Source: Auanema rhodensis
Taxonomy: Eukaryota; Animalia; Nematoda
NCBI GenBank assembly: GCA_964057225.1
Contig: OZ059896.1
Location: 13,764,001 to 13,828,000, forward strand
Direction: 5' to 3'
DNA length: 64,000 nt
Part shown: in pieces, positions 3,965-61,800 of the stretch
How the letters are laid out: the number at the start of each line of letters is the position of its first letter
Numbering within the stretch: position 1 is the first letter of the stretch
Translations under genes and position numbers: made by a program
Notes under the pieces: model-generated
The model's database searches: none
What the model was told of the DNA's origin: nothing
What the model saw: the letters and a program-made list of their open reading frames with translations, nothing else

Positions 3965-6260
3965 ATGTCTTCATACGGAGCCATTGGCCTTGAGGGTTCA
4001 GAGTTAGTTAATTTTTTTTTTGGGATTTTATTTCTCGTTATTTAGCACTGATCCATTATTAGAGGCCGAAGCTTCCATTCGGAGATCTGCATCTGCTGCT
4101 GATTTACCTGTTGTAAACAGAGCAACACAGCCTAGAAATAGTTTTCAAAGACAACCTTATTTATTTACAGGTTTGTTCCAATCTTATTTTTACTTATAAT
4201 TTCCAATTTATATTATATAAATGATATAATTCAGGAGGAATAGCTTTGTCTCCTGATGGCAGCACATTGTCATTACATTCTGGAGAAGATTATCATCGAG
4301 AGCACAACAATGCTGTTCGTTACCGACTATACAATAGACTTGATCCGGGGGGGCATCAGTTGGTATGATCTATGTTTAACATTCTTAGTTTTTCGTTTCT
4401 GTTTTAGAGAATGCCAGACCATGTCACCCCTTCTGAATTCTTCTCCATTCTTCCTTTCGACGACATGCGGGACGGAAGTGGCAAGCAGAGCAGTATAGTA
4501 ACTATGTAAGATCTTACTGTGTTTTATTTAGTTTACTTTGTATTTCTAGTTTTTCACTATGGAATACCATAATGGGTACTTCCTTATTAAGTATGCCTTG
4601 GGCATTACAGCAGGTAGAACATCCTATGCTCTAACAAGCCTTTATCCCTAACTTCCAGGCTGGTCTCGCCCTCGGCATATTTATTTATTTAGCAATGTGT
4701 GCAGTTTGTCTTTATACTGCTTATAGGGTACTACAAAGTGCCGATGGGTTACGTAAGTATATTGCGAATATATGAAAGCCCTACTGTCATTTCAGCTGAT
4801 CTACAAGTTGATCCATCGGTTGCTGAATTTAGTGATGTTTGTGAATATTTTTTCGGGAAATTTGGAAAGGCCATTTCGGTCGTTACTTCTGTTATAGTTT
4901 TTCTTGGCGGTATCATTGTCTACTGGGTACTCATGTCTAACTTTTTGTACTATACTGGAACTGTCGTATATGGTACCTGTAATCATTTTGAACTGTTCTG
5001 AACTGATTCCATTATAGAAGCATTGCAACCCAACAGTACAACGATTCCTATTATGGAAAATAAAACATTCACATGTGATAGTACGTCACTTTTCCAGTTA
5101 TTCTATAAGATTACATATTTGCAGTTTATTGTCCGGACGAAATTCAACAATCTTTTTCATCTGTTCTATCAGGTTTTAACAATGGTACTTCTGAATCTAC
5201 CTTTGATAAGCTTTGGCAGTTACAGGTGCGAATTACCAAACTTTTTTATATATGTCGTTCGATTTTTTACAGGGAACAGTTCCGTTTTATCTTGCTATTG
5301 TAGCCTTCCCACTTTTTAACTTCAAGTCTCCAACTTTCTTTACTAAATTCAATGTTTTGGGAACCATATCAGTTGTGTACTTATTAGTCTTTACTGGTTC
5401 TAAATTTGTAGAATGTGGTTTCAATATGGATTTTGTCAATCCAAATTCTATTCATTATGTTCAATGTAAGTGTTTCTTTTATATTTTATTAAGATTTATT
5501 CTCCTTTCAGTGTTTAATTGGAGGTTCCCTGCTTTAACAGGGACATTAACTCTGTCTTATTTTATTCATAACGCTGTTAGAACCATATTAAGAAATCAAC
5601 GTAATCCTGAAAATAATGCTCGTGATTTATCTATTGCCTACTTTTTGGCGGCTGGCTGCTATATTTACATTGCAGTTGCGTTTTTTGCCGGATTCCCGGT
5701 GCAACGTAGTTGCATAAGTGATGTAATGTTTCAAAGTCCAGGCTTTTAAAAATCTTAACATTCAGAATATGCTCAATAACTTTGGTTCCGGTGATATTTT
5801 AAGTAGTATGGCTCGACTATTTCTGTTATTCCAAATGCTTACTGTACTTCCTTTACTAATGTACCTTACAAGAACTCAAATTTTCTACTCAATTTGTGGA
5901 AATGGCTATCCAGGGTGAGTATCAGTACGCAATTTTCTAATTTCATTATTCAATTTCAGCGTTTTTTGGGTTGTTTTAATGAATTTGGGCATCATGTCTG
6001 TAGCTATTTTCTTCGCCGTGTTTTATCCCAAAGTTGGAAGTATTATCAGGTAAAGAATTTTTCTAAAACTGTCTTATCGTTGTCATTATTTCAGATATGT
6101 TGGCGCTATATGTGGTATGGTTTATGTTTTTACTCTTCCTACTGTTGTTCATCTGAAAAAACTCCATATGAGAGATGAATTGACAGTTACCAAACAATTC
6201 CTGCATTTTCTTATAATTGGGCTTGGTGTAGCGAATATGATAGCACAGTTTGTCATGTAA
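3965..6260 (+). CDS. SLC38A9: Lysosomal amino-acid transceptor SLC38A9 orthologue, multi-exon
   Basis: N-tail [22 protein letters not shown]1 [18 protein letters not shown]; also [29 protein letters not shown] and [25 protein letters not shown]. Ends AQFVM*. Confidence 0.95.
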
Positions 6261-12400: not shown

Positions 12401-14162
12401 TTTGATTAACGGAATTATGATGTTAAATTAAGTTGCTATCAATATCAGATTTTCATATTTTTAATCGAACAAGTTATACCAACTGGGTACTTTGACCAAT
12501 CTTTGCGAGCTTTATCTGTTGACATGTCTGTTTTAAAAGATTTGCTACATCAACGATTACCAAAAACAATGCAACATTTGGAGAATCTGCAGCACACATC
12601 AGGTTATTTTTTTACGAAAAGCGACATTATTTACTCTGGTTATATTAGGGAATGACTACGAGCCTGCTTTGACCAATGTCTTCTCTATGCATTGGCTGCT
12701 TACTCTTTTTGCTACTTGTCTTCCTCGAAAAATTGTTTATCGAATATGGGACGCTGTTATGCTCGAGGGTTCTGAAGTTCTGCTACGCACAGCTTTAGCT
12801 ATTTGGGCAAAAATCAGCAAGTAAGTTCGAGAAAGTACAAATATTCAAAACTCTAATGTTGCTCACACACGTCTAGTCAGTTCAAACAGTTAGAAATGGA
12901 GATAAATAAAAAAAGGAAAATATATTGAGAAAAATATGAAAACTTAGATTGATAAAGATATTTCTTTTCTAAATTGCAGTGGAACCAACCAAGGGTAACG
13001 CTAAAATTAAAATAAAGTTTTTTTTTTGAAGATCCATGTACACGTGCGTGTAATATTCAAAATTTTATGTTAAAAGATTTTCTCTTTTCGTATTAAAAAG
13101 TATTTTCAGGAAAATTCTAACAACTACAAGCGCAGATCAGTTTTATGATTTAATGGAAAAATTGAGTGTTCAATTGGCAGAAATGAGTGACACAGACCAA
13201 GATAATCTCATTATGGTATTTCCACATATATCACAATCTTTATGATTATATCTCTAAGGTCGTATATACAATGGAACCTTTCCCATATCCAGGGTTGAAC
13301 GAGTTACGCGAGAAATATACTTGGAACATTCAACCTTTATCTACAACTTTCAAACTTTTTCAAAAAAGTGTATCCAACATTCTTCACGACGAATCTGAAT
13401 CAGATTCGACCGTATCATGTTCACCCTGCCAAGGCAATTCTTATGGTTTTCTAGTATAAAATAAACTGTTTATAGGATCAGGAACAGATACCGAGAACAA
13501 ATGCAAAAAAACTGACATTCAACAGTTACAGGCTCAGTATCGGAAGCTGTTAAATAGACAACGACAAGCTTCTGTGATTTTGAAATGTAATTCAGAGTAT
13601 ATTCCCACGAACTTTCTCACAATTCTATTTTAAGCTGCTTTTGTGAACGCACAGAACAAACTTTCTAATAATAGCGTAAACTACTCAAATTTTTTAATCA
13701 ATAATAAGCCGGTCTTTAATCATTTGAGAATATCGAATAATTCAGAACTAAAAGAAAAAAAGTTTAAATCACTCAAAGAAAAAAAAACACTTTTTCTTTT
13801 AGTAAAACTACGTCACCGACGTTAGCTTCGGGGGCAATCGCACTTACACCAACTATGGTCCAACCAATGGAAGCAGACTTGCGATCGGCAGGCTCAAGCC
13901 CGCATTTGGGGTAACTGTTGTGTAATAGATAAAATGTCTTATCTTGATTATATAGGGAACAGAGAAGACATTTACAAGTAGACCCGAAAAATCCGCCTTT
14001 CAAGGTCACATTTACCTGCACTGACATAAAAACTAAATATATTATTTTCAGGAAACCATATTAGATAGGCAGTCCATGTTGAAAAAATCTAAAGCTTTGC
14101 TCAGGAGTTTCACAACCGAAGATACACCTATTTTATCAAACGTGCGGTCTTCTCATGCTTGA
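9447..14162 (+). CDS. TBC1D30: Rab-GAP TBC domain protein, TBC1D30-like
   Basis: ARLPGGIPDYFRLKLW, IIKDLHRTG (Arg finger), YNKSIGYCQGFN (Gln finger), EPALTNVFSMHWLLTLFATCLP, YPGLNELREKYTWNIQP. N-terminal coiled-coil exons at 9447-10268; the exact 5' end is less certain. Confidence 0.85.
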
Positions 14163-14445
14163 ATTCACTTAACAGATGTTTTACGTATATAAAAAATAAA
14201 TATTTTGATGTTTCTCTAATGAACAAAATATCCAGCTAATCACGTCGACTAAATATGAAATTATGTTGTAATGTTATATAAATTTAAAATGTTTATAATA
14301 TTTTGGAGGGAGGATGGATTTAATTAATTAAGAGACTATGTATTGTATCACATTCATAAATTATGGTGTACAAATAGAACGTATAAGACAGTTTCTACTG
14401 AAATAAATTAAAACACAACAAGGACCCATAAGTGGAGGATAAGAT

Positions 14446-14819
14446 TTAAGCGCGGCTTCTTGTGAATTTTCCCCAGATGTGCAAGACGAATACTGAAGCG
14501 ATGAAAACTAAGCTCATAACAAGAACTGGGACAGGTCCGATCTTAAGTCCAGTAGAATCTTCAGTGTAGAAACGCCACATGCCTCCTTGGCTTCCACTAG
14601 CACGAGCTCTTCCAGAAGACTGGGCGGCTCCTTAAATGTTAAGAGATAATTAATTATTTCAAATCAAAACACGTTAACTTTGTTAGAAACTTCCATAGGG
14701 AAACAAAACTCAATTGTTTGTTTGATTTAATTAAATATTAAAAGAAACAAACCTCCAGAGCGTCTCTGTTTCAGCTGAGTTCCAGCGCTTGGGCGAGGGC
14801 TACGGCCAGTGTCAGACAT
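14446..14819 (-). CDS. sec-61.B: Protein translocon subunit Sec61 beta (2 exons)
   Basis: [83 protein letters not shown]. Confidence 0.97.
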
Positions 14820-14949
14820 TATTACTAAATATTATTAAAAGTAAATTTATATAGTTATACTTGAACATAGATATAGCAAAATAATATAGAAAATAACAAA
14901 GCCAAAAACGACAAGACTGTACTGGTAGTTCAAGAAAAACAAAAATCAG

Positions 14950-15262
14950 AGGAGACAAAGACCCCACTGATATATCTCGGCCACGATGGTAAAAGAGACA
15001 GCATGAAAACGCTTGTACGTAGAATAGATGCGTACTGTACGTCTCTGGCAGACATCCAATCTCTTTGCAGTTCGACTGTTCAGCGTCCCTGCATTCGCAG
15101 GCTGACACGACTCATTGCAGTTCGGTAGGGCTGCCGCGCAGTTTGATGTTAGGCCAAGCCACGCCCTTTGTGTGCATTCTTGGCTAACGTTACCTTTGCA
15201 AGGGAACACTGCACTATACTCTGCTATAGTGGCGATTATGCGCTGGATCTTAGTCGGTCTTG
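14950..15262. ncRNA. Candidate ~310-nt structured non-coding RNA of unknown family
   Basis: GC-rich island in an AT-rich divergent promoter. About nine nested helices are visible, including a 5'/3' closing stem (14954-14964 with 15245-15255). On the minus strand it ends CTGATTTTTG. Strand unresolved. Confidence 0.55.
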
Positions 15263-15480
15263 AGTAAGAATCATGAAGTTCCATATATTCATTACTAGCT
15301 TTTCCATTTCAGCGTCAAGTTTTTCTATTTAGTTAAAGACCTTTGCATTGCATCACAATTACTTAGATATTAAAATATTTTTGTTCCAATTTTTGTAGCT
15401 CGATCCATGTTATGAAGTCTCTTATCTCAGATATTTTATTTTTTTATTTCGATTTTTTAGACTAAACATATTTATTCACT

Positions 15481-16179
15481 ATGGGTAAATTCACCAAGGA
15501 AGAGGAAGTTCTTCTCTCTAGCTATTCTTCTGGAAATACCGCTAAGAGCAATGCTCTTTTCTACATCAATGCTGCTGTAATCTCTGTTGCTCCAATCTAC
15601 CTCTTTTACGGTGTTCACCAAATGGAGGTTTGTATAAGTTAAAGTATATGTGACTTATCTCCTGTTTTAGATTGCTGATTCATGGATTGTTTGGGTCATC
15701 TCTGCCGCTGCTTCCATCTACCTCCTCACCATGGCTTGCAAGAATCAGAAGAGACTTTTGAAGGATTCGTAAGTATTTCTATAGCTTAATTTTTTTGTAT
15801 CATCAGCACACAACTTATCGATAATTATATATTATTGTAGCATCATGACCAAGAGAAGCGTTGCTGTTGACCGTGAGATCAATCAAAGATACGGTAACGA
15901 TAAGAAAATGAGCACCAAGGAAAAGGAGGTGAGTACTGACTTGACCTAATTTCTTTCAAACTTACCATTCTTTAGGAACGCGCTCTTTACCGTAAAAACG
16001 AAGTTGCTGATTCAGAGGCTACTTATCTTTCTATCTTCTTCACCAACATTCTCTTCTTGACCATTCTCCTCTTCCTCGCATTCTTCCTTCTCTCCAACTT
16101 GGCTCCACTTTTCAACTCTCTTTTCTCTATTGTTGGAGCTGCCGGTCTTGTTGCTTTCCTATCCACAGCTAAGAACTAG
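15481..16179 (+). CDS. trap-3: Translocon-associated protein subunit gamma (SSR3)
   Basis: MGKFTKEEEVLLSSYS..SNALFYINA..PIYLFYGVHQME; KKMSTKEKEERALYRKNEVADSEAT..SIFFTN; GAAGLVAFLSTAKN*. Confidence 0.97.
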
Positions 16180-16397
16180 ATATCTAAGTGTGTACTTCCT
16201 GTAAACGTGTTTGTTTATTTATATGGTAATAACGGGACCGTTGTTGTAGTTTGAGAACGATTAATTAATTATTACAGCTTTTATCAATATTTATTAAAAA
16301 CTGTTTTACAAAATAAAAAAGTCTCATAAAAAGGTGTGTTTTTCCTAAATACTTTGACATTTTGTAACGTTTCGATTTTCTTAATTTCAAAGCTCAG
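16180..16397 (+). promoter_or_regulatory. Operon-type intercistronic region between trap-3 and the eri-5-like gene
   Basis: AATAAA at 16312, then a U-rich stretch, then an AG acceptor at 16396-16397 directly before the ATG. The ~85-nt spacing is typical of SL2-type operons. Confidence 0.6.
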
Positions 16398-18704
16398 ATG
16401 AGAATCGGCAGGCAATCCTCGAAGAGGCCAAAGTCTCCCATAACTGTTGTCTCAGACAAACAAATTTTAATGTGTAGAAATGGGATTATTGATAATACAA
16501 TGAAGGTAATTCTAGGTTGGCTAAAAAAAGCTGATTTATAATTATAGATAAATAGAATTCCTTTAATAAGGACTTCAGTTGTTGAATATTTGGGATTAGA
16601 ATCCCCATCGTGTATTTGGGTCCGGTTACCAAATCATATAACCCCAAACCTTGTGATAACTGATTTGTAATATTATTATTTCTGAAGAAATCACATGAGC
16701 ACGTTTACTTTATAGAAAATCTTTGACAAAGGTTACGGAAGAAATTCAAGAATTTGATTATTTTCTTGCACCTATTGAAGAAGGGGTTTTTGCCAGATGT
16801 CGAGTAATCAAGGTTATTTTTGTTTCTCTCACAATGATCGAACAAGATTGAACTTTGTAGAAAGAATCAAACACAATGAGGGTACTTGTTATGTTTATAG
16901 ATCACGGTGTTAAAGCTTGGATAGGAAGAAATGTTAGTATTGTTTATCAAATTTTACAACATCTTGATTAATTCAGGTCCTTGCTGAAATGCCTAGTGAC
17001 TTCTTGCCTTATCACCCTTGGCAAGCAATTTGTATTTCCATTCATGGTCTTAAAATGCAAGGAAATCCCGCTTTAGAAGCAAGAGTTGGTGGATTATGTA
17101 TATCTCTCTTTGAATATAGATATTTTATTAGATAACACCTAAATGGAACACAGAACATGCTCATATTTTAAGAGAAATTATGGGCTTTTTTAACTTTTTT
17201 AGAACAAAAACTATTTTCAGTAGTGAATACTGTAATGATTATCGTGAACCTAACAAGGTATGAATAATTCAATTTAGTTAGCATTATCAGCTATAAAGGT
17301 CGAACTCTTTGGATTACGTGGTGCTGACGATGAGATTGGAGTTTCTATCGCTCATATCTTCACTTCCAAACTTGGAAATCTTTTTGTAATTCCCATTAAT
17401 GTATTTGATGCTTCCACTGTACAATCTATTGATAATTGTGACCCTGAGGTATATTCGTCTTCTGTTTTATGACACTGTCCTTATAAGCACTTCAGAAGTG
17501 TGATGAGTCAAGCATTCCAATATTTCAAAAGGAATGGCCAGTTGACGATGATAATAGTGATGATGAGTTTATTGAACCAGTAGTAGATAACTGGTCGCTT
17601 TGGTGTCCTGAAAAAATACAAATCCCTCTGTTAACTCCAGAGTGGCTTTGCGAAAATGGGTTTGTAGCTATATATAATACTTTACGACTTTTTTTTTTTG
17701 AGTTATGCTTTTGGGTCTGAAGGAAAGAAGCAGTTCTTACTTTCCATCGAAGGTCAACATACGCAATCTCCATATGAATGGTATGGCAGGCCTATCAAAG
17801 CTAAAACTGAAAGTTGTCTTTCTTCGCGATCTTCTGATTTAAATTTGCATTTCAGGTAATAATACTAATAAGTTCGATAATATGAGTTTGATGTTGGAAG
17901 CCGATGAGTTTTTGAAATCTAAATCTGATATGTTGGACGTATTTTATTCCAAGAGTGCCAACAGACATCAAATGGACCGAACAGATATGTACGAATAAAC
18001 TTAATGTTTTTAGTTTATAAAATATATTTTTAGCTCTAAATGGCTGAAAAATGGTCTAGCTGTTTATGCTATATTTGGAACATCTGAAGAAAGAGCTCTT
18101 TATACTGGTGAATGGCAACGAGTTCAGGTAACATGGAACTTGAAAAAATTATTCAAGTTCTTATAAAATTCTTCAAGGTTGTATCTTGTGATGAATCTTC
18201 CTGTATTATTCGTTATTTGGATTCAGGAGGACGTGAGTTGGTTGTACCTAGTCAACTTTACAAAATTCACACGAGGTAAGTATATTTCTACTATTAGTAG
18301 ATGTCAGTTTTTTTATAGCCATTGTACCTACCCTCCATTATGTGGCCAGTTTTGTTTACAAGGATATAAAGATGTTGATCCCAAAGCTTATGAAACCAAA
18401 AAGAAGTGGTCAAAAGAGGCGATCAAAGCGTGGAATATTCTACTTCGAGTTGATCTTCCGGTCTCGGTAGAACATTTAGGTTTTATTTATATCGTTATAC
18501 ATTAATGTAAGAATTTCATTAGGAATGTTGAATGCTCCACAATTAAAAACTGGTGTAGTGCCATATGAGGAAAATCATGTTCTTTGTGCTAAGCGTGTAA
18601 GTATATCTGGCATTGATCTGGCTGTCGAATTGACCCAGATAGATGGTCCTGGGGGTGCTCTAATAGATGTTACAGCTCCAGTTACGTATTATCAAAATGT
18701 ATAG
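16398..18704 (+). CDS. eri-5: Tandem Tudor-domain protein, ERI-5-like
   Basis: Two extended Tudor units: ESPSCIWVRL..FLAPIEEGVFARCRV..VMFIDHG..HPWQAICISIHG and SPYEWYGR..GEWQRVQVVSC..IIRYLDSGG..HCTYPPLCGQFCLQG. It sits directly after trap-3; from my recollection trap-3, sec-61.B and eri-5 share cosmid Y38F2AR in C. elegans. Confidence 0.72.
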
Positions 18705-18814: not shown

Positions 18815-21800
18815 TTAATGTGTTATATCGGGAATGTTCTCGATGCGTGGTTCCCATCTTCGTGCTTTCTTGTCCGCCTTTTCCAGCTTTCTATACCGAA
18901 GTGTTCGATAAAGAGCTAAATAAATCTGAAAATGTTTTCATAAATATCCTCATCGTTATTTTCTTTTTGCTTACTCCATGCACAAATTTACGGAATAAGG
19001 GAGATTCAGAATAGTTTTCTGGAAGTCCTACAGACACCTTATCCGATCTGCTGTGCAAGCCAAGTTCATGTTTTATCTAGAAATCAATATCAATCCAGCT
19101 TTCTGTGCTGAAAACCTTGTATGATATATGCTCGATTATCTCATAATTATTAGCTAAACGATCTGCATTGTTTCTCACTAATTCAAACTCGTACATAATA
19201 ATCATTACGAATACATTCTGTAAGAGAACAGTCCCCAAGATCATATAGAAAAGGAAATATCCTGATCCTGAAGTTTACAAATTGAAAAGATATGCTTTTG
19301 CATCTCAATACCTAGCACGGATACACTATACAATTTGCCTCCTTTCAATTTTCCTAATAATGAGGAGACTAATGATTGTAGTGAGATGATATATGCATGA
19401 TATCTTAATTTCTTTCAGTATATATATATATATTATATTGAAGATCTACCCATCCAACTGATTTCCAAGTAGGTGAAGCATAGCCAACGTAAAAGCATTT
19501 AATATACAAAAGAATGATTTTCCATAATCAACCATACCACGCGTTCCACTGTGCAAAGTATCAGCAAGAACTGTGATTCGATGATTGAATCTGTTAAGGA
19601 TCATGAGGATAATGCTGATACTAAGCTTTGACAAACCTCAATATTTTGATTAGTTTACATGAGACAAAAAATACAATAATTGCAAAAGAATAAAGGAAAA
19701 ATAGATCGGCATCTCGTTGTCTCGATAAATTAATATAAGAATTTCCATTTGTAGCAATAAAAGTTTCAATAGCCTAATTTCAGTGTTTTAACATACTTAT
19801 ATAATAGTATTACCTCTTGAACAAAATGAGTTTTTATTCCATATGCTACAGCAGATAATAAAGCTATGACTCCAACAAGTAAATCTATAGTTTGCCAAAG
19901 GTCATAACCACTGAATCTTCATCATACAAAGAAATGAAATGATTTAGAAATTCTTACCCAATCAGGAACCATCTTACAAACTTAATTGGATGAAGTAACA
20001 AATGCTTGGTGAACAGTCTGTGTCGATCATAAACAATAACCACAAATTCAATCAGAAATTTGATTACACAATAACAAAGATACAAATACTAATATAGATA
20101 AATAATTATTTGTATTAAAATAATGTACAACCTCAATCGTTTTATTTACTTCATCTTCTTCTCCTTTAATCAAACGTAAAGATTCAATCCAGACCGATGG
20201 GATACAGAATCCTGAAATTAGCATATACATTTATGAATAAAAAATTATTTTTTTTTTGTTAATGATGACATGATCTATTGTATTTAGATTTGGGAATACT
20301 TACGTTCACGAGGAATCTCAAGAAGCAGTTGAACAACTGAGAAATAATTTACTTGAGCATTATATAAGGAGAACTCAACCACAACAGCTCTTGTATTCTA
20401 TTAACATTTTATTATTATATAATAACTTGTTTAAGTTTTACTTTGTCAATCCATAGTTCTTTTTCTAATCTACTGAAACGTTCACGAAGAGTATCAGCTG
20501 TACCTTGTAGTGATATAGCATATCCTCCTCCTTTATAAGTTCCAACTTGACCCATGATATTTTCACCTACAACATCGAATGGTAAAGGTAATCGAGAAAT
20601 CAACAGAAACAACTTTTCAATATATCGTTGTTTCTATAAGTATATTCAAGAAGAGTCTTGTTTTCATATGGAGTCCATGATGAACCAAAAAAAGGAGTTG
20701 TATCATATCCAACCACCCATAGATCTTCAACGCAACTTGAGTTTGAAGATGCTTCAGGTAAAACAAAATTGCATTCGTGAGGTTTTGATCGAATTTGTCG
20801 AATAATACCCATTCCCATAGCTTTTGATGCCTCAAATTGGTTTTAGAAAGGTAACAAAAAGAGAATGAGAGGCTATATATACCATATCATTGACGAAACC
20901 TCTCATGCCATAAGCAGGTTCGTCATCAGGCCAATTTGCGGATAAACCTGATATGCATATAAGGTACATCAATTTTAAATAAGCATTAATAATACCATTT
21001 ACAAGATATTTGTTGGCCCAGTTCCAAAAATCTTCAACATATTCGATCTGTGTGAATGAATCAGTAGATTTTTCAATGTTGAACGTGCTTTTAACCTTAA
21101 ATGAAAAATGTATATATATATAAATTTAAAAGGTTAAAATAACATCTTACATCTTTTTGATAGTAAAATCCAAAGCGATCTCGCAATAAATAAGTTAAGC
21201 TTGTAAATATAATTAAGGAAAATAGCAAAAAGATTATTTCCCTTATAGTGTTGAACAACACTTCATCTCTGAATAAAAAAAGTTTAGAAGTCAGAAAATC
21301 AACTATGTAACCTCATTCGATTATCTTTTGTCGTTTTCAATTTGGATAAATCAGCATACGTTTTTCCGGTAACATCATCCAGTATTTCAGGTGGGCATTC
21401 TAAGATAATACTTTCATGTTCAAGTTTTGTATAGTTTAACATACTTTCGTAGTAAGGCAGGGGATTCTTCGGTAAGAAAGAAAGCTCAATATCTGATAGA
21501 ATATTATGTCGGATATTCTTTTTAATTGATCGTAATGAAATCAAATATGCCTAAAATGGTCAATATTATCAAGAACATATTGTTTATATACTTTAATTGG
21601 TTCAAATATAATTATCCACAACATTAGCATAATCATAAATCTTAATGTAAAAGCTGTAGCATACTGTTCAGATAATGAAAACGCTGTCTAAAAATATGAA
21701 AAATTTGAAATTTAGTATCAATTAAGTACTAGTTGTATGACAACATTAAGCATATTCTAATTAGCATAATTAGTCATTTTCATATAAATGTGAGTTATGA

Positions 21801-58893: not shown

Positions 58894-61800
58894 AAAAAAC
58901 AAACATGAAAAGTTAAAGTCAAATAATTTTTTTGTCTTCAATGTTAAAAGAAAAAAACGTTTTGTTTGATTGTTCGATATCTGTTGATGTGGCATGAAGA
59001 TGTCTAGAAATTCGCTTGGCCTCTCCTATATACATATGTATTTCCCTTTCAACCTTTCTTCTTATTTCACTCATTTTTCGAAATACCTAAAATTTAATTT
59101 TTGAATCTTTTTGTAAAAATATCGAAAGCCGTTCATTCATTCATGTTGGCACACCTATCTGAAACATTTTTTTATAAGAATTGGTTGTAAGCCAAACAAA
59201 AAAAAGAGAAAGAGATAAAAGAGATGAAATTAAAAAAGAAGATAAGATACATCTTCTTAATCATTGTATTTCTCTTGGAACACCTTTTTATTAATATTTA
59301 ATAAAAATAATCGTATTGTATGATAATTATATGTATTAGTATTATATTTTTTTCTGACTTATCTCATGGTTTTCCATTTACAGAAAGTTAAATAAACTAG
59401 TTATGTCAAAATCTTTTTTATATTTATACAAATTAAATTTTATTTTTATTGTTATAAATAAATAATAATATAGTAATTATTTATAATAATTTTTATTTAT
59501 TATATGTATGTAGTTAGTTGTTTAGAATGTAATATAATCAATGATCATCGTATGTCACTTTCTTAGAAGAAACAGTTGTTTTATTAGGTTCTTTCCAAAC
59601 TCATCAAGCTAAAAGCTAGACTTACAACCAAAAGTTATTTTCTTCTCTCAGAATATCTTCTTAAAACAACTTTTTCTTTAAATGTTTTCTTTATGATTGT
59701 AATTAGCATATTGATCGTTGCGGTCGTAGTAATAAATGACACACGTAATTCACGTGAACATATGCGTGAATGACGAAAATAAATTTTTCTTTATAATTAT
59801 TCAGAAAACAAGAACGGTTGCTCATTCTTCACTGAAATTCTAAATATTTTATTTATTTCTATGCTATTATATGTATCTCTCTTTAACCTTTTATAATCTC
59901 CATTTCACTCATTCTCCTTCTTCTCTCGTTTTTATTCTTTCATTTCAGATTTTTCTTTTTGTCTTCTCTTATTACTTTATGATATTTCCTGTCATTACAC
60001 ATACTTAAACATTATTTTTCTTTCGAATATGTACAGAAACGTTTTTCATTTTTTTTTATTAGCTTTCCAATATAGATATATTTCTTATATTGAATACGAA
60101 TAACTCGTTTACTAACATTTTATTCTAATTTAAAGTTTAATACATATGTATTTGCATGATGTAACCACCACCTTAGCTAGATAGATATATCTACATACAT
60201 AGCATAAGCATTCATACATCCATCTATGTACATTCAAGATATATGGACTCACAACAACTTCCGAATATGACAAATAAACGACAAACTTTCAGTTCTTTAA
60301 TGACACAACTAAAAATAACCTTTAATCTTATAATTTTTTCAGGCTTTCATTTTATTTTTCATATGATATTCATATTTGATAATAATGAAATAGTATAAAA
60401 TTGCTTATATTTGAAAGAAACTACTACATTCAATAAATTTTTGCTGTTAAAATCTAAAGAAAATACATCTAGTTCTCATAAATCTCAGTTTATTTCCCTT
60501 TAAATCTATTTGTTTTATGGCTTCAGGTTATTTATATTTTTCGGTTGACGCTCTGTTCCATTGACTCACACCTCAAGACGTTTTACGTATTCCTTGGCCT
60601 CTTGCTGAAAAATGGATAACGGCTGTTCCGTTCCTTTTTTTCCAGATGTCATGATTTTTATTGCAAAAGATCAAAAAAAGATCTTAACTGGAAAAAGTTG
60701 AAAAAAGAAATTGAAAATTCTTGAGTAAAAAACATAAAATTCGAATTTAGTCTGGATGCCATTGACAGATTAGCTTTAAGGCTTTTTCGCGTATCTCTTC
60801 CAGAAGCCTAATTATAGCAAATATTCCTCTATCTTCATCGATATGTGAAGAGTTTGGTCATTTATACTAAGACATGATGATGCTCTTTTCCCATTCAGCT
60901 TCTTGTAGGCTACTACAGAATACATGTAGCGTCTTCCGACAGCGTCATCGGCAAACCGCTTACATAATGGCCTAGATGATGTCAGTTGATTTCGTCTATT
61001 CAACTATTTTCGGCCGACAACGCAAACGCAGAAGCAGAATAAGAAGAAGGAGTAGTAGAAGCAACAGAAGCTGCTCATTTTTATATTTCCCTTTTTCTCT
61101 CTCTATCTCTCTTCCATTCTCTCTATATGCAGAAATCTCGATCATGGCCTGTTGCTTTAGCTTTTCCAACTTCTTGTGGCCATCTTCTCTATCCACAAAC
61201 TGAATCAACTCTGCACTGCCAGCTCCTGCTTCTCTTTCTCTTCTCTCCCTATGTCCCTTTCTTCCGTCTATCTTGAACCCAATCCGAGGGTCACCCCCCC
61301 CCCCTTTCCTTCAACTCCTTCGACCTCTTCCCCCCTCGTTCTCAGCATCTAATCGTATCTTTTCTTTGCTCCGCCTACTTCTCACCCGCAATGCAACATC
61401 GGCTCATAACACTGTTTTCTTCATCAACTCATAACAAAGTAACTGACACGTCCAGCAACTCAAGTCTTTTTCAATCCAACTCAACGATGATTTTTTTAAT
61501 CTTTTTTTTTGGAGAAATCAAGAATGCAATCAGCTAACATTCAAGCTGTAATTTTCATCATGCTTGTCATCGTTGAGCATTTCGAAATAAAAATTTATAA
61601 ACATAGTAATAGTTATAGATATTCTCTTTTTTCATTTTCTTTCCTTAATCTTCCAATGTTCATTCATGTCCTAATCTGTGCTTGGGTTCATCGTCTGTTG
61701 ATGCCGCAAGTCCTTCCTCTTCATTGCTAATTAAAGTTGCTTCCTAAACTAGCCAGCTGCTGAGAAATGGACCCTATTTCCTATTATCTTTCCGATTTTA

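Follow-up and report, generated by a model that had tools for sequence, protein, structure and literature searches.

What is the short, GC-rich island that separates two divergent genes for components of the ER translocon in the nematode Auanema rhodensis, and in what form does it act, as DNA, as RNA or as a coding sequence? We addressed this question with a 64-kb stretch of the genome (hereafter the window, to whose numbering all positions refer unless otherwise indicated) and with the corresponding loci of other nematodes. Pfam assignments bore out the identity that an earlier note on this DNA had given to the flanking genes, with Sec61-beta on the minus strand (ATG at 14820, second exon at 14446–14630) and TRAP-gamma on the plus strand (ATG at 15481). 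The compositional contrast that it had described is also real, as G+C amounts to 45–51% over 14900–15300 versus about 27–34% in the flanks, and CpG occurs 5.5 times per 100 nt within the island versus 2.2–2.5 times in the flanks. From the GC profile, the CpG density, nhmmer matches and the identity to a sister species, we place the conserved island at 14936–15262, with no strand assigned. The main reading previously put forward was that of an unclassified or divergent ncRNA gene. We favor, with modest confidence, a different one, in which the island is a deeply conserved promoter module of Sec61-beta that is shared with TRAP-gamma where the two genes are neighbors and that acts as DNA.

Orthologous loci were obtained by way of the Sec61-beta proteins of other nematodes. 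The closest is that of Auanema sp. JU1783, whose Sec61-beta protein is 95% identical to that of the window; the island itself is about 85% identical over about 315 nt, while its flanks can barely be aligned, and in 30-column windows the identity is 73–97% within the island and 37–60% outside it. The divergent Sec61-beta/TRAP-gamma pair with the element between its members was found in JU1783 and in seven Caenorhabditis species (C. elegans, C. briggsae, C. bovis, C. remanei, C. brenneri, C. angaria and C. auriculariae), and all eight of these loci also share a Tudor-domain gene beyond TRAP-gamma. Matches to the orthologous loci in nhmmer had E values of 1e-8 to 1e-59, a profile built from eight species recovered the element in C. 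auriculariae, in two Haemonchus loci and in Necator, and the Angiostrongylus element was recognized by eye. The motifs described below are common to the seven Caenorhabditis loci and to four strongylid loci from three genera, and Pristionchus has a short core. CpG density reaches two to four times the flank level in most species. The C. elegans element (positions 4424–4693 of the extracted locus L002, chromosome IV at about 2,388,980–2,389,250) carries a perfect TTGGCATCATGCCAA, and a 34-nt block beginning with AAAACTACAACG is shared without change by C. elegans and C. briggsae and is almost unchanged in C. brenneri and C. remanei. Literature searches on the C. elegans locus, on a fragment of its sequence and on the Y38F2AR ncRNAs found no mention of the element. 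The annotated TRAP-gamma model of C. auriculariae (240 aa, L032:875–2467) covers most of the conserved element, and Sec61-beta starts about 560 nt farther on; the gene models there look doubtful.

The strongylids help to assign the element to one of the two genes. In Haemonchus, Necator and Angiostrongylus, TRAP-gamma lies 1–4.5 kb away and the element is found about 190 nt upstream of the Sec61-beta ATG in unchanged orientation, which indicates that it belongs to Sec61-beta. Orientation is likewise kept, with a distance to the ATG of about 160–225 nt, in 10 of 13 loci. Read in the Sec61-beta orientation, the element starts with a clade-specific upstream half that contains a GC box, followed by a 14-nt arm of the CTGCGTGGCTGCCC type, a free spacer, the complementary arm, a CRRRCTRCAA motif, a 15-nt palindrome of the form YTGGN-N5-NCCAR, and a TAC-N-GTA palindrome; about 100 nt past the last of these the sequence becomes rich in T and has TATA-like or GATA-like blocks. 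Synteny is broken in P. pacificus, and the short core present there, which nhmmer missed, lies about 100 nt upstream of the Sec61-beta ATG (L006:5854–5908) and consists of a short inverted repeat (GGCGCGT/ACGCTCC), GAACTGCAA, two bases and TACGGTAG, with no YTGGN-N5-NCCAR palindrome. Conservation across the rhabditids in a maintained position upholds the view that a functional, selectively constrained non-coding element resides in the divergent promoter of Sec61-beta and TRAP-gamma.

The element is neither a repeat nor, in all probability, a gene for a small protein. Even with three mismatches permitted, the 64-kb window has a single occurrence of the element's motif pattern, and nhmmer over the window returned no match besides the element itself, so that a dispersed repeat or transposon fragment was rejected on the grounds of single copy within the 64-kb window. 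A metagenome scan with an 18-base conserved pattern gave 21 matches, all of them chance-like and located in unrelated, mostly GC-rich contigs. The ORF list includes a 112-codon ATG ORF on the minus strand (14946–15284) that spans the island, and its ends nearly coincide with those of the island, as would be expected if the conserved unit were a small protein gene. The ORF, however, belongs to no Pfam family, a search of 5.8 billion proteins gave no homologue, no ORF is shared with Caenorhabditis, and in JU1783 the frame is broken by one- and four-base indels that leave a longest ORF of 67 aa. With the frame lost in the sister species, we rule out the coding interpretation and judge the ORF fortuitous; a small protein gene here is very improbable.

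A folded RNA had been the central proposal for this island, in the shape of a closed multi-branch structure of about 310 nt. The nine complementary segment pairs that define this structure all exist where the earlier note placed them, and the note was right that G–U wobbles are equivocal as to strand, as G–U asymmetry fails to separate the two. The structure itself was not supported. Against dinucleotide shuffles, the fold of the 326-nt island scores z = −0.54 for the minus and −0.97 for the plus strand, significant for neither, which is the outcome that the note itself had named as counting against an ncRNA; the core of the element in the window scores +0.70 and −0.25. Over 13 species the core z averages about −1.4 on either strand, being strong in some Caenorhabditis and absent in the window. 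When the nine stems are followed into JU1783, pairs are lost at the positions that differ and compensatory double changes number zero, with plus-strand stems decaying from 6/6 to 3/6, from 7/7 to 5/7, from 5/5 to 2/5 and from 7/7 to 4/7. Consensus folding with RNAalifold gave modest structures for six Caenorhabditis, similar on both strands, and only −2.4 kcal/mol for the core over 13 species.

Searches for described RNA families (SRP, RNase P/MRP, 7SK and U3 among them) were consistent with the prior claim that the island lacks the diagnostic motifs of SRP RNA, RNase P and MRP RNA, U1–U6 and tRNA. With Rfam 15, the stretch 13000–17500 of the window gave at E ≤ 1 only a chance match to tsr24, outside the island, and the JU1783 (L001) and C. 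elegans (L002) loci gave no match in the element at E ≤ 0.1; ARAGORN found no tRNA gene. At the gathering score, zero Rfam families were found over the whole 64-kb window, which is therefore devoid of any recognizable tRNA, snRNA or snoRNA gene. The island does resemble the Pol III type-3 ncRNA genes (7SK, RNase MRP RNA and RNase P RNA) in its length of about 300 nt and, in Auanema, in a TATA-like box about 25 nt upstream together with a terminal T5 run, but differs from them in having no Rfam match, no conserved upstream element and no conserved terminator. The two Auanema signals, read directly from the DNA on the Sec61-beta strand, are TATATA at 15283–15288, which has no counterpart in Caenorhabditis and a similar TAAT.AATAT block in JU1783 only, and five T residues following CTGA at the island's left edge (14941–14945), a run whose position is not kept in other genera. 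The earlier observation that the minus strand ends in CTCTGATTTTTG is accordingly correct as to presence, about 120 nt before the Sec61-beta ATG at 14820, and fails as to a terminator, the T5 run not being conserved outside Auanema. In the elegans group such signals are found on the opposite strand, where TATAAAT precedes the element and TTTT follows it. On the Sec61-beta strand the element is itself interrupted by T4 or T5 runs in C. elegans, Haemonchus and both Auanema, and across genera neither a Pol III nor an snRNA-type promoter or terminator is conserved. On these counts a Pol III type-3 gene was not supported.

More specific RNA candidates fared no better. A 7SK RNA was rejected, since the GAUC motif is found in Auanema only and the candidate published for Caenorhabditis is another RNA, which is U8-like and present in two copies (PMC8406779). 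A box C/D RNA was set aside for its lack of UGAUGA and for a CUGA that is not conserved. The template of a telomerase RNA would be made of GCCUAA repeats, and this candidate was dropped because the match is 6 nt long and lost in JU1783. Read on the TRAP-gamma strand, the element's invariant motif is TTGCAGTTCG, which resembles box B (GGTTCGA) of the UM2-type, tRNA-like promoters of C. elegans snoRNA loci (PMC2527325), but its GTTCGA core is altered in C. brenneri, Necator and Angiostrongylus (GTTTGC, GCCCGA and GCTCGA are among its forms) and no box A is found at the 33-bp spacing; with ARAGORN also null, an internal promoter of this type was rejected.

The content of the element is instead like that of a promoter, with short motifs that look like binding sites. 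One is the 15-nt palindrome TTGGATGTCTGCCAG (YTGGN-N5-NCCAR, minus strand, 15045–15059), a nuclear-factor-I (NFI)-type site whose spacing is the same in 13 rhabditine loci. TGG-N7-CCA is invariant in all 13, a perfect TTGGC-N5-GCCAA is present in four species of the elegans group (C. elegans, C. briggsae, C. remanei and C. brenneri), and 11 of 13 retain the T before GCCA, a base that an RNA hairpin would have on its loop side, so that at the sequence level this is a candidate NFI site. C. elegans NFI-1 binds the vertebrate NFI consensus, and its ChIP targets are said, at second hand, to include protein-translocation genes (PMC3337475). The island resembles NFI-1 target promoters of C. elegans in its 15-nt palindrome with the exact TTGGC-N5-GCCAA spacing at 13 of 13 rhabditine loci, perfect in four Caenorhabditis, and differs from them in that the left half-site is degenerate in Auanema (TTGGA) and that P. 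pacificus has no site. Other NFI-type palindromes in the window are TTGGCCCAGTTCCAA and TTGGTTGTAAGCCAA, at 21013–21027 and 59181–59195; the count of such matches is not above chance, with 5 strand-wise matches at three places, the island's own included, versus 2.6 expected.

Three further motifs accompany the palindrome. The motif CGAACTGCAA (consensus CRRRCTRCAA, minus strand, 15065–15074) is present in 13 of 13 loci with A/G changes only, takes the form TGAACTGCAA in P. pacificus, and in its full pattern occurs once within the 64-kb window. At a fixed position after the NFI-type site stands the TAC-N-GTA palindrome (TACAGTA here, minus strand, 15033–15039), whose central base is C in Caenorhabditis, A in Auanema and G in Haemonchus, Necator and Pristionchus. 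We know of no factor for either CRRRCTRCAA or TAC-N-GTA. A GC box of the Sp1/KLF type, GGGCGTGG (minus strand, 15159–15166), lies in the best-conserved stretch of the island (90–97% identity to JU1783); GGCGGAG is found at the equivalent place in JU1783, Haemonchus, Necator and C. auriculariae, giving a forward GC box in five lineages, and the inverted form (CTCCGCCC) occupies that place in C. angaria and C. bovis. No ERSE, nor an NF-Y site adjoining CCACG at the required spacing, was found in an alignment inspected by eye.

One pairing within the element is conserved over a wide range of species. Its 5′ arm, CTGCGCGGCAGCCC (minus strand, 15128–15141), is conserved in sequence in 12 species and pairs in one register with the 3′ arm, GGGACGCTGAACAG (minus strand, 15076–15089), which stands directly before CGAACTGCAA; in the window, 10 of the 14 positions are paired. 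When sequence alone was used to align the arms over 12 species, 122 of 168 cells are paired in this register versus 50–87 in slid registers, and on the opposite strand 125 of 168, so that no strand is preferred; across species, 73–78.5% of cells are paired versus 32–47% in slid registers. The inverted repeat shows some double changes within Caenorhabditis. For the repeat and the neighboring small hairpin together, the covariation score is 0.171 versus 0.119, a value that 4 of 500 shuffles reach and that related sequences can attain with no structure, and the number of double-change pairs, 7, compares with 5.7 in shuffles (133 of 500). The inverted repeat is thus the only robust pairing in the element, with weak covariation and neither strand favored. 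Of the structured leader that had been proposed as an alternative to an ncRNA gene, this single repeat stays a candidate, whereas the other stems do not, and even its own covariation is weak. The 5′ arm begins with CTGCGT, six bases that it has in common with the ESRE stress element TCTGCGTCTCT of C. elegans (PMC7322875; PMC551538); the likeness ends there, and the rest of the arm, GGCTGCCC, mismatches. The 5′ arm and CRRRCTRCAA are 35 nt apart in Pristionchus, 55–56 nt in Caenorhabditis and 65–67 nt in Auanema and the strongylids; these steps of about 10–21 bp correspond, in a post hoc observation, to one or two turns of DNA across free sequence. The earlier note had also remarked on a duplicated sequence, and TGCAGTTCG does occur at both 15066 and 15116 (0.15 copies expected by chance). 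Its second copy, at 15116–15124, falls within the variable spacer of the inverted repeat and is gone in JU1783 through a 4-base deletion, so the duplication is specific to the species of the window.

Evidence at the RNA level came from contigs of three small runs of unspecified library type that carry the same species label. A contig from one run (X2) begins at 15234 and is continuous with the spliced exons of TRAP-gamma, and one from a second run (X1) begins at 15242. These starts mark the right edge of the island (15234–15262, plus strand) as the 5′ end of the TRAP-gamma primary transcript. In X1 the leader has a depth of about 6 versus about 750–890 for the exons, or about 1%, as expected for an outron, and the leader at 15234–15480 indeed looks like an outron that is removed by trans-splicing. 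The primary transcript seems to start about 250 nt upstream of the TRAP-gamma ATG, and a TTTTTTAG acceptor is found at about 15461. The interval 14740–15195 has no RNA contig in the three runs, though contigs of depth 1–6 were recovered nearby; as the first exon of Sec61-beta was likewise missed, its lack of coverage is weak evidence.

We suggest that the island would form the core of an RNA polymerase II promoter region between Sec61-beta and TRAP-gamma, tied chiefly to the former, in which an ordered set of motifs (the GC box, inverted CTGCGTG/CACGCAG-like sites, CRRRCTRCAA, the NFI-type palindrome and the TAC-N-GTA palindrome) would be laid out along a CpG-rich stretch and from which transcription would exit both ways. 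The start site of Sec61-beta would then probably coincide with the left edge of the island or lie close to it, NFI and GC-box factors are predicted to bind within it, and the inverted repeat may act at the level of DNA. CpG-dense bidirectional promoters of broadly expressed genes are an established class in C. elegans. The island resembles them in its GC- and CpG-rich stretch of about 300 bp, its divergent housekeeping genes, its GC box and a TRAP-gamma transcript that departs from its edge, and differs in that motif order and spacing are kept from Caenorhabditis to the strongylids and partly in Pristionchus, far deeper than is usual for nematode promoters. For a promoter, however, the conservation is unusually long and tight (about 85% over some 315 nt between the Auanema species, plus the 34-nt block in Caenorhabditis). 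The one-register pairing of the inverted repeat in 12 species, with a covariation score matched by just 4 of 500 shuffles, and the negative mean of the core z over 13 species (about −1.4) also weigh against it, as does the clean absence of the NFI-type palindrome from between its two flanking motifs in P. pacificus, which is how a dispensable hairpin might be lost.

It is therefore worth asking whether the element might work as RNA, either as an unannotated ncRNA or as a discarded piece of the Sec61-beta leader with its hairpin, GAACUGCAA and UACNGUA, from Pristionchus to the strongylids. We regard this as possible though rather doubtful. A cis-acting form of the idea, which we consider unlikely, has the inverted repeat, GAACUGCAA and UACNGUA folding in a Sec61-beta outron and affecting trans-splicing, pausing or transcript fate; the transcript would originate within the island or upstream of it and lose its leader to SL trans-splicing. 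The orientation and the distance of about 160–225 nt to the ATG that 10 of 13 loci maintain would suit such a leader, as would TTTCAG-type acceptors directly 5′ of the ATG, with a second acceptor 30–45 nt past the element in Caenorhabditis. The pairing of the inverted repeat in one register with some double changes points the same way, and the hairpin reaches z values of −3.5 to −5.5 in C. remanei, C. bovis and C. angaria; in the window, however, it is weak (z = +0.3, 10 of 14 pairs), the paired cells are equal on the two strands (122 versus 125 of 168), and the double-change pairs do not exceed those of shuffles (7 versus 5.7, 133 of 500). The outer pair of the small hairpin runs through U–A, U–G and C–G, a series that fits the Sec61-beta strand but equally fits the degenerate Y...R positions of the NFI consensus. 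Finally, the body of the island yielded no contig, while the equivalent leader of TRAP-gamma was recovered at low depth. An independent ncRNA gene of about 200–320 nt, transcribed by Pol III or by a snRNA-type Pol II promoter and adjoining Sec61-beta throughout the Rhabditina, seems to us quite improbable. Such a gene would account for the long conservation with its sharp bounds, for the single copy of the element in the 64-kb window, and for the signals that bracket the element, which on the minus strand of both Auanema are a TATA-like box about 25 nt ahead of it and a T5 run behind it, and on the opposite strand of the elegans group TATAAAT ahead and TTTT behind. But these promoter and terminator signals change strand with genus and none is conserved, the element is interrupted by T4/T5 runs in C. 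elegans, Haemonchus and both Auanema, and the GTTCGA look-alike varies where box B is invariant, with neither a box A nor a tRNA. Scarcely any space is left after the element for a separate Sec61-beta promoter, the Rfam searches found no match (E ≤ 1 in the window stretch, E ≤ 0.1 in L001 and L002), the fold and covariation statistics are weak, and the body of the island has no RNA contig. With no fold signal, stems that are not maintained and no contig on 14740–15195, the unclassified ncRNA gene loses its place as the main reading. What leaves some weight on both the leader hairpin and the ncRNA is the length and tightness of the conservation, the persistence of the inverted repeat and the small number of RNA runs.

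If the RNA reading were true, the element would be a new conserved nematode RNA tied to the expression of Sec61-beta. Under the promoter reading, the practical value of the analysis lies in removing a false ncRNA candidate and in flagging two orphan motifs, CRRRCTRCAA and TAC-N-GTA. If the promoter reading that we favor is true, the island would be an unusually deep nematode promoter module, in which the order of motifs is fixed, spacing changes by helical turns and NFI is a candidate input to an ER-translocon gene, and would provide a test case for promoter grammar rather than a new kind of element.
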